The translations under genes and the position numbers were made by a program. Below the pieces are notes generated by a model. The model saw only the letters and a program-made list of their open reading frames with translations, ran no database searches and had not been told where the DNA came from. DNA of 63,741 bases, filler included, from Olpidium bornovanus S191 (lineage: Eukaryota; Fungi; Olpidiomycota), in the NCBI GenBank assembly GCA_017911155.1. It is 32 parts of 32 records of this genome, joined end to end, with 100 filler letters (N's around TTAATTAATTAA, not from the genome) between each part and the next. Parts side by side here need not be neighbours in the genome. Positions count along the whole stretch, not along the records: positions 50,696 to 52,450 come from JAEFCI010012054.1; 31 more parts are not named here. One strand, written 5' to 3'. The stretch's first letter is position 1. Every line of letters begins with the position of its first letter. Below, piece by piece: positions 50,874-52,450 of the stretch.

Positions 50874-52450
50874 TTACTCCGAGTGACAGCAGTTCAGGAG
50901 CGGCTGGGCCGCGTGCCGCGAGCCGTCCGGCTTCGCCGGGTATTTCTCTCGCGGGAACTCGTCGTCGAACGCTGCCGCCTCGACGTTTGTTGCCGGGAAG
51001 GTTCCGCCGACGGCGACTAAAGAAAGGACGACCTGGGGGAGAAAAAAAACCGACGCTCGCCCGGTGAGTACCCCATTCCGCCCATGCTTCCCGTGCCGCG
51101 GCCCCACATCAAAAAAAAAAAAGAGAAATCCGCTCTCCCACGGGGCAGACCACCGCTGACCTTCGTGACAAGGTCTGCGACGCAGTACAAAACCTCCGCT
51201 TCCTCGAACGAAAGTTTTTCAAGCATGGACGCGGCCCACACTGCCGGGAAGAGGGGCCACGCCGCCGCGGTGTAGACCTTCAGGATTTTCAACGCCGCAA
51301 CGCGGCGCTCGGCGTTGTTCCTGTCGGCCCGGGCCTTCACGATGGCAGAGCTCGTCCACATCCACAGCTTGACCGTGAAGACGACCAGACACCCCAGAGA
51401 GAGAAGGCACATCGGGACGGAGTACATCGTTGGGAGGCACGACGCGAGGAGTCTGGCCGCGGTCGCCACCTGTCCGCGAAAAAAATAAAAAACAATCGTC
51501 GGTTTGACTTTCGCCCACGACAGAAAAAAACCCCCTCTTTTCTCGATTCGTTTTGTTTTAAACTCACTCCTGAAGCGCACTTTTTATTTATGCGATTGCG
51601 AGGTTGTTTTTTTTGGGAAAAAAAAAGGAAGTCAGCTCGGGTGCGAGAAGATTTTCTAAATTTGAAAATGTCAATGTTTTTTTGGAACGCACGCCGCGGC
51701 CTTTACCATCGCCCACGCCATATCTCCATCTCCTTTCGCTAAAGTCAACCGGTCCACCACGAGAACCGACATCGGCTTCACGAAGGCCCTTTTTTATTTT
51801 TTGCAAGCGGAGGTAAACGGAATTTTTTTTATTATAGCTTAAAAGGGGTGGGATCGGGGTCACTTAAGGCTTCACGGTCTGCATTACTTCGCAATCACTT
51901 GCCATTGAATGTACCGAGCCGTTTCGATCGGCCGCCCATTCACGTCTAGAATTGTCGGCAGCCATCCCCGGGCGAGGCTCGCGTATCCGACGATGTAAGC
52001 GAGGTCGATGTACGCGAGCGCCGCGTGCAGTCGGCGAGTGGAAAGGTCGGTGCTGAGGAAGTGACCGTACAGCGACAGCGAAAGCGTGACGGCTTGATAG
52101 AATTTTTTTTGCGTCAGTCACCGGTTTATTTTTCTTTTCGTTTCTTCTTTTTTTTTTCTTTTTTTTTTTTTTCTTTCTCTGTTTTTTTTTCTTTCCATTT
52201 TCTTTATCTCTTTCTTTTTTCCCCCAACTTCCCCGAAACCTTTTTGTCTCCGCAAAAGAATTAAGCAGAAAAGAAAAAAAAGAAAAGGAAATTCACTGAC
52301 TGTCGCTTACTCAGAACGGCGATCGAGCTGAGGTACCAGGGATCGCTCCGGTCGAAATCGGGGACCTGCAGCCCCGTCGACAGCCAGAGTCTGCTGTGGC
52401 GCAGGACGATCAGCGACGAGACGCCCACGAAGAGCCATCCCGCGAACATG
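50874..52450 (-). CDS. Microbial (type 1b, 8-TM enzyme-rhodopsin-like) rhodopsin, 5'-truncated
   Basis: Exons 52450-52311, 52092-51903, 51788-51707, 51469-51161, 51032-50874. Helix 0 FAGWLFVG, helix C ARYIQWAFVKP, helix F AWPLFPAVW, helix G EAEVLYCVADLVTK|VVLSLV with the retinal Lys codon at 51163-51161. Confidence 0.9.

Follow-up and report, generated by a model that had tools for sequence, protein, structure and literature searches.

Can a rhodopsin of the fungal rhodopsin-guanylyl cyclase (RGC) lineage be maintained without its cyclase, and in what way would it then act? This question is raised by the minus strand of the piece at positions 50696-52450 (1755 bp, 53% GC) of the window, the term used here for the whole stretch of DNA that was analysed, 63,741 nucleotides in length. 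The piece holds one gene, a spliced gene for a type-1 rhodopsin at 50874-52449, and the reading that we favour, with somewhat more confidence than doubt, is that this gene encodes a cyclase-less, retinal-binding rhodopsin of the RGC lineage in which the 8-helix membrane module (helix 0 plus helices A-G) would have been kept. The protein is best read as comparable to, yet distinct from, the GpNeoRh and GhNeoRh fragments of Rhizophydiales. In the literature searched, Olpidium was linked to a rhodopsin only as absent. A published survey entered 'NF' (not found) for every component of the CyclOp system in the proteome of O. bornovanus S191 (GCA_017911155.1; Galindo et al. 2022, PMC9616733), and the loss of this system was placed before Olpidiomycota diverged from terrestrial fungi (PMC9616733).

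The identity of the protein as a microbial rhodopsin was established from its domain match, its topology and its pocket residues. The Pfam family Bac_rhodopsin (PF01036) matched exon 5 with 28.2 bits (cut-off 24.6, E 1.6e-6) and exon 2 with 16.8 bits (profile positions 31-76). Eight hydrophobic segments were found in a hydropathy scan (residues 1-19, 37-59, 67-87, 107-121, 136-153, 155-185, 198-224 and 232-261) and these are helix 0 plus helices A-G. In alignments with PDB structures the sequence RYIQW of helix C was aligned on RYIEW of CryoR2 and RYAEW of Rh-PDE, and helices F and G were found to carry W212-P-L-F215-P216-A-V-W219 and D240-L-V-T-K244, respectively. The Schiff-base lysine K244, D240 and the pocket residues W110, W212, F215, P216 and W219 are all present, and given K244, D240 and an intact aromatic pocket, retinal binding is likely. 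Look-ups in the ESM-Atlas returned 'bacteriorhodopsin-like' and nothing finer. The preliminary description of this locus had proposed a microbial rhodopsin that is encoded by a spliced gene and has one more helix at its N-terminus, and on both points it was right: the Pfam score exceeds the cut-off, transcripts exist, the peptides that it quoted are encoded on the minus strand, and the extra helix is the hydrophobic segment at residues 1-19.

The splice sites were derived from the sequence first and then checked against assembled transcript contigs of public runs. One transcript contig each in the runs X1, X3 and X5 (99+% alike) skips exactly the predicted introns (transcript skips 52092/52311, 51787/51902, 51469/51707 and 51029/51158, the last with its cut shifted by +3 to 51032/51161), and the gene is thus transcribed and spliced. 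The transcripts support six exons of 139, 190, 82, 12, 309 and 159 nucleotides, giving within the piece a coding sequence of 891 nucleotides (296 residues) that ends with TAA at 50876-50874. Every junction was borne out by the transcripts of the three runs. The count of five exons in the earlier splice model has to be raised to six, a micro-exon of 12 nucleotides having been missed; in addition, intron 2 is of the GC-AG type.

All exons lie on the minus strand. Exon 1, followed to the piece edge (52311-52449, 139 nucleotides, phase 1, donor GTAAGC, joint 52092/52311), contains helix 0, the loop RHS..W..GLQ..PWY and the start of helix A. It is followed by intron 1 (52093-52310, 218 nucleotides, GT..AG), which is rich in A/T homopolymers and is absent from the X1, X3 and X5 contigs. 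Exon 2 (51903-52092, 190 nucleotides) encodes the last part of helix A, helix B and the first part of helix C, in which R106-Y-I-Q109-W110 lies. The joint of intron 2 (51789-51902, 114 nucleotides, GC..AG, reading TG/GCAAGT ... AAAAAG/G) at 51787/51902 has 2 ambiguous letters, and a known splice-site pair (GC-AG) is obtained only at the +1 placement. Exon 3 (51707-51788, 82 nucleotides, delimited by transcript joints) supplies the remaining part of helix C (AFVKPMSVLVVD) and the C-D loop, the mRNA across the intron 2 joint reading RYIQW/AFVKP. A stronger-looking GTAATG donor 15 nucleotides downstream, which would add QVIAK to helix C, was ruled out by the transcripts. The region 51706-51470 (237 nucleotides) is skipped in three runs with 12 letters kept between the two sides of the joint, and these letters have a unique match at 51579-51568, as AG/TGCGCTTCAGGA/GTGAGT; this is the micro-exon, exon 4 (51568-51579, 12 nucleotides), which encodes CASG within helix D. 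Exon 5 (51161-51469, 309 nucleotides, 103 residues) contains the end of helix D and helices E, F and G up to K244, its last codon being that of the lysine. The last intron (51033-51160, 128 nucleotides, GTCAGC..AG) lies immediately 3' of this Lys codon, a position shared with the Olpidium copy described below. Exon 6 (50874-51032, 159 nucleotides) encodes the end of helix G and a cytoplasmic tail of 40 residues with a DEFP..REK motif, followed by the TAA. The 3' untranslated region (50702-50873) has an A run of about 30 nucleotides on the mRNA strand and the transcript contigs reach 50702-50728; there is no further splice, the transcripts being collinear with the genome from 51029 to 50702.

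In about 16 runs under several organism labels, and in a soil metagenome, about 45% of the sampled words were found, in spliced form, and this share is what the exons contribute. This distribution fits an organism carried along in samples that are labelled otherwise, e.g. a root or soil parasite. Words from the introns were observed in none of the listed runs. Three runs of the study P3 (X5, X9 and X13) had been guessed to be DNA, and X5 carries the fully spliced form, the word shares of X9 and X13 being 0.41 and 0.26; these runs are probably cDNA-derived, and a processed gene copy may be an alternative source of the spliced form in them. No read of the gene was found within the 6% of the raw-read run X21 that was read, which is too little to count as a test. 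Some differences between transcripts and window were also observed. At window position 50860 (plus strand, in the 3' untranslated region) the window has C and all three transcript contigs have T, and there are 8 gap letters within 50702-51029, where the homopolymer run of about 30 nucleotides is situated. These are likely to represent a strain difference or a homopolymer assembly error. Very long A/T homopolymer and purine/pyrimidine-rich tracts were seen at 52124-52295 (intron 1) and 50798-50846 (3' untranslated region), and the Olpidium contig L001 has tracts of a similar kind.

The 5' end of the gene is not contained in the piece. Only one base separates the ATG at 52449 from the piece edge, where the reading frame is open, and transcript contigs reach beyond 52450 by 1433 nucleotides in X1 (contig of 2489 nucleotides) and by 1254 nucleotides in X3 (contig of 2291 nucleotides). 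Because of this position of the ATG and the continuation of the transcripts, the protein is N-terminally incomplete in the piece. Following the ATG the hydrophobic run is only 16 residues long, and in the best full-length relative more of the helix and at least 200 further residues precede the position equivalent to this ATG; the edge of the piece probably truncates helix 0. The same extensions of the transcripts past the 5' edge, with a frame that is open there, would be expected if the mRNA 5' of helix 0 encoded a cytoplasmic signalling domain, making the protein an enzymerhodopsin with inverted domain order, and the N-termini of RGCs are known to regulate the enzyme (PMC4569695). We consider such an N-terminal effector quite unlikely, given that the relative has its 200 or more residues before helix 0 free of any Pfam domain, that a featureless N-terminus together with a 5' untranslated region explains much of the length, and that assembled transcript contigs may fuse neighbouring genes.

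The assignment of the cyclase-less rhodopsin to the RGC lineage depends on its relatives. Among 1.84 billion representative proteins searched with HMMER, using the 103 residues of exon 5 as query (E ≤ 1e-3), only three proteins matched: BJ554DRAFT_8456 of Olpidium bornovanus (P0001; 57% identity to exon 5), a protein of 394 residues from the Logan transcriptome contig L002 of SRR31163103 (P0002; 38% identity) and a rhodopsin at 765-1457 of the JGI metagenome contig L003 of 3300078833 (P0003; 33% identity). Word-indexed protein searches returned only P0001 and cyclase-only matches, and scans of metagenomes with the family profile and with an exact 26-mer of exon 1 gave no matches. P0002 is the only relative with a readable domain layout, and this layout (PF01036 Bac_rhodopsin plus PF00211 Guanylate_cyc) is that of an RGC, a kind of fusion present in swimming spores of fungi; its cyclase part has matches at about 1e-31 to the cyclase structures of BeGC1 and of the Catenaria RGC. 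The contig L002 (2145 nucleotides, coding at 3-2088) encodes helices 0, A and B in an upstream frame past a frameshift. The break, which lies between helices B and C, is either a frameshift or unspliced sequence. Residues 1-291 of the window protein matched L002 with a summed tblastn E of 1.8e-36, and exon 1 matched the helix 0 of L002 with 37% identity over 46 residues (BLASTP E 6e-11), the two having in common F-x-G-W-L ... R-H-S-x-x-W ... G-L-Q ... P-W-Y. On this similarity helix 0 of the window protein is judged to be homologous to that of the P0002/L002 fusion. When a profile of the four family members was compared with the PDB, Rh-PDE was the best match (2.4e-5), followed by GtCCR2 and ChRmine (about 6-8e-4) and bacteriorhodopsin (no better than 7e-3), and P0002 gave the same pattern (Rh-PDE 3.5e-11 against 1.2e-7). 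Taken together, these results support the view that the window protein belongs to the opisthokont enzymerhodopsin (RGC/CyclOp-related) lineage.

Two of the relatives showed features of their own. Set beside the canonical cyclases P0004-P0006, the cyclase of P0002 looks degenerate: Asn replaces the second metal-binding Asp (IGDAY to KCNEF), Thr replaces the catalytic Asn (GDTVNTA to GDTVTTA), and the LP..V..L CTE motif is lacking. P0003 has a Cys at the primary counterion position (R-F-I-C-W) and matches the window protein more closely (E 1.7e-14) than it does the RGC P0002 (7e-4); no cyclase was found within its contig of 1.87 kb.

The preliminary description had called the protein CyclOp/NeoR-type. 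Helix 0, the RGC fusion as relative and Rh-PDE as the best structure agree with this label, whereas a cyclase or linker and the Glu/Asp/Glu triad of counterions are missing. Several observations weigh against placing the gene in the RGC lineage as a retinal-binding sensor. Rh-PDE is ahead of the channelrhodopsins by only about 4 bits in the comparison of the family profile with the PDB, and canonical fungal RGCs (BeGC1-type) were not matched by the 103-residue exon at E ≤ 1e-3. The link to the RGC clade consists of one fusion protein (about 30% identity) and helix 0, and the GC content at third codon positions is 0.80 in the window gene and 0.64 in the Olpidium copy, a difference that may point to a separate species or only to the surroundings of the gene. 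The 1.25-1.43 kb of mRNA 5' of the piece could hold an effector domain, and the Lys K114 in helix C, at the position of T90 of bacteriorhodopsin (BR), is unusual and might disturb retinal binding.

The remaining pocket positions were mapped to BR through the alignment of P0002 with BR. By this mapping R82 corresponds to R106, D85 (counterion position ci1 of NeoR) to Q109, W86 to W110, T89 (ci2) to V113, T90 to K114, P91 to P115, D96 to V120, D115 to S140 in the micro-exon, W182 to W212, Y185 to F215, D212 (ci3) to D240 and K216 to K244. D130 was considered as the D115 equivalent, forming a salt bridge with K114, and was rejected, the HMMER alignment of P0002 with BR putting D115 on S140. The usual counterion site carries no negative charge, being occupied by Q109, and because the primary counterion position holds this glutamine, D240 would be the sole carboxylate counterion. 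Given that there are no carboxylates at the BR D85 and D96 positions (Q109 and V120), proton pumping is excluded. The protein is neither Hsp30/Yro2-like nor a DTD/DTE proton pump, the two identities that had been named at the outset as speaking against a sensory rhodopsin of the CyclOp type; the lysine is present and the motif is Q-V-V.

Halorhodopsins, NTQ pumps and anion channelrhodopsins are marked by an uncharged residue in place of BR D85. With Q109 at this position, and with ChRmine, GtCCR2 and GtACR1 among the next-best PDB matches, the protein might instead be a light-driven or light-gated ion transporter, e.g. an anion pump or channel. This is very unlikely, since enzymerhodopsins are indicated both by helix 0 and by the best homologues, and since the Q-V-V motif is not of the TSA or NTQ type; the match of the single sequence to ChRmine was at chance (E 0.35), and the matches of the family profile, although below 1e-3, came below that of Rh-PDE.

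The absence of the cyclase was examined on the mRNA and in a second gene. The stop codon is located 52 residues after K244, there is neither a linker nor a cyclase on the mRNA, and the 3' untranslated region of about 170 nucleotides is collinear in the transcripts. No cyclase-like sequence was detected in the piece by tblastn with the cyclase domain, and the 40-residue tail after helix G gave no Pfam match and no coiled-coil or CTE-like linker. A copy in Olpidium bornovanus (gene at 1-812 of JAEFCI010006564.1, assembly GCA_017911155.1; L001) is likewise without cyclase. As in the window gene, its exon ends on the Lys codon, a micro-exon of 12 nucleotides (CMSA, at about 131-142) matches the CASG micro-exon in place and length, and the donor is the same (...AM/GTAAG); the stop is found 55 residues after the lysine and the tail carries the same D-E-F-P ... 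R-E-K motif. Because this copy shares the architecture, the micro-exon, the donor and the tail motif, the missing cyclase cannot be put down to a fault of assembly. Over 167 codons the two genes have 52% identity and a ratio of nonsynonymous to synonymous substitution (dN/dS) of 0.16-0.22, dS being saturated, and this ratio shows the truncated architecture to be under purifying selection.

An origin by gene fission, with the rhodopsin and the guanylyl cyclase now encoded by two genes and their products joining to form a cyclase under light control, would also leave a rhodopsin gene of this kind, and has been proposed for Homolaphlyctis polyrhiza, in which the two domains are 547 nucleotides apart (Galindo et al., PMC9616733). 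The piece ends about 180 nucleotides past the stop, leaving room for a downstream gene. Fission is nevertheless unlikely, given that the approximately 2 kb 3' of the stop of the Olpidium copy showed no cyclase-like sequence (tblastn E > 1), that the tail is without a coiled-coil or CTE-like linker and that the O. bornovanus proteome was reported to have no GC1 homologue ('NF', PMC9616733), although the same survey missed the rhodopsin. This oversight can be traced to the gene model: P0001 scores 23.7 bits, just below the Pfam cut-off, and it was missed because a truncated, intron-containing model falls below that cut-off. BJ554DRAFT_8456 represents only part of a rhodopsin gene and is wrongly modelled; its contig starts within exon 3, the model translates intron sequence at both ends, and the true tail exon is at 648-812.

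The selection data also bear on whether the gene is a decaying relic, still transcribed but having lost light sensing after the loss of the CyclOp pathway, as in the colourless GhNeoRh, CcNeoR4 and the opsin-related proteins. The loss of cyclase and primary counterion, the odd Lys in helix C and the already degenerate cyclase of the nearest RGC, P0002, would be compatible with decay. Set against this are an intact frame of 296 codons across six exons, robust expression, the low dN/dS relative to a 52%-identical copy with the same architecture, micro-exon and tail motif, and the retention of the Lys, D240, W110, W212, P216 and W219, and we regard a relic as rather improbable.

If the favoured reading of a cyclase-less RGC-lineage rhodopsin is correct, a mechanism can be outlined. 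All-trans retinal is predicted to bind K244. Because the primary counterion is neutral, the chromophore is predicted to be either red-shifted, with a protonated Schiff base that is weakly stabilised and has a low pKa, or deprotonated and absorbing in the ultraviolet/blue. Natural NeoRs with Gln at ci1 have been described and one of them, CcNeoR3, absorbs at about 410 nm with a deprotonated Schiff base (PMC10622942). Without a catalytic output, the most plausible role would be that of a light-sensing or modulatory subunit. Signalling might take place via the cytoplasmic N-terminus and the short conserved tail, or by pairing with a membrane protein such as a full RGC. Such a role would be analogous to that of the non-activating NeoR subunit and of the cyclase-less NeoR-like rhodopsins of Rhizophydiales. 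The zoospore light-sensing function put forward in the preliminary description is likewise conjectural. More tentatively, and with doubt prevailing, Olpidium-type fungi, which among zoosporic fungi stand nearest to the terrestrial ones and for which loss of the CyclOp system has been reported, may keep a small, selected family of RGC-derived 8-helix rhodopsins without cyclase that signal in a new way, through an N-terminal part on the scale of 400 residues or as light-sensing partners of a further membrane protein; this would be a stand-alone 'helix-0' class of sensory rhodopsins, not recognised before, in which Gln takes the counterion position.

RGC derivatives that lack the cyclase have been described before, as has glutamine in the counterion position (PMC10622942). 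What is new is that both occur together with canonical aromatic pocket residues, with Lys at T90, and in a host of the Olpidium type. An RGC-related rhodopsin is expressed here by an organism with Olpidium as its nearest match. If this source is borne out, the photoreceptor module outlived the cyclase fusion in the Olpidium lineage, which changes the scenario for the loss of the fungal 'eye', and the gene shows, in nature, an enzymerhodopsin of which only the sensor is left. BJ554DRAFT_8456, a homologue of the window rhodopsin, is present in the very O. bornovanus assembly in which the survey found no CyclOp components (PMC9616733). For optogenetics and spectral tuning, the canonical pocket, the Gln at the primary counterion position and the Lys at the T90/DC-gate position would make up a natural combination of interest.

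Compared with known systems, the window protein resembles the fungal RGCs (BeGC1/CyclOp, CaRGC and the chytrid RGC(a)/(b)) in its 8-helix topology with helix 0 ahead of helix A, in the long N-terminal extension, here implied by the transcripts, and in the motifs R-Y-x-x-W, W-x-x-F/Y-P-x-x-W and D-x-x-x-K; helix 0 together with a cytosolic N-terminus was first described as a distinguishing feature of the CyclOps (PMC4569695). The rhodopsin-Guanylate_cyc fusion P0002 is homologous to it from helix 0 to helix G. Unlike the RGCs, it is without a coiled-coil/CTE linker and a class III guanylyl cyclase domain, it has a Gln and not a carboxylate at the primary counterion site, and its nearest relative comes from Olpidium, a fungus for which the published survey reports no CyclOp system. 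Compared with fungal proton pumps (Nop-1/CarO/LR) it differs in Q109 and V120 at the D85 and D96 positions and in the eighth helix, and compared with the Hsp30/Yro2 opsin-related proteins in having the Schiff-base Lys K244. Rh-PDE of Salpingoeca rosetta (PDB 7cj3/7d7q) is an enzymerhodopsin with eight transmembrane helices and shares the helix G motif C-V-A-D-x-x-x-K, but it has a C-terminal phosphodiesterase domain, a Glu counterion and a TCP motif in helix C, where the window protein has FVKP.

Further parallels are found among the NeoRs and the NeoR-like rhodopsins. Gln at ci1 is natural in CcNeoR3 and CsNeoR1, and NeoR acts as a non-activating partner subunit. NeoR differs in having a cyclase domain and typically the counterion triad Glu, Asp and Glu at ci1, ci2 and ci3 (PMC10622942), whereas the window protein has Q109, V113 and D240 and keeps the arginine of BR R82. 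NeoR-like rhodopsins without linker and cyclase have been reported from two Rhizophydiales and their function was called mysterious (Broser et al. 2023, PMC10622942). These proteins, GpNeoRh and GhNeoRh, share with the window protein, as described, the absence of linker and cyclase and a reduced counterion complex. Their genes adjoin RGC(b) genes on the opposite strand, and their residues at W86, W182 and Y185 are changed to Gln, Asn and Ile/Val, whereas the window protein, with W110, W212 and F215, has an essentially canonical pocket.

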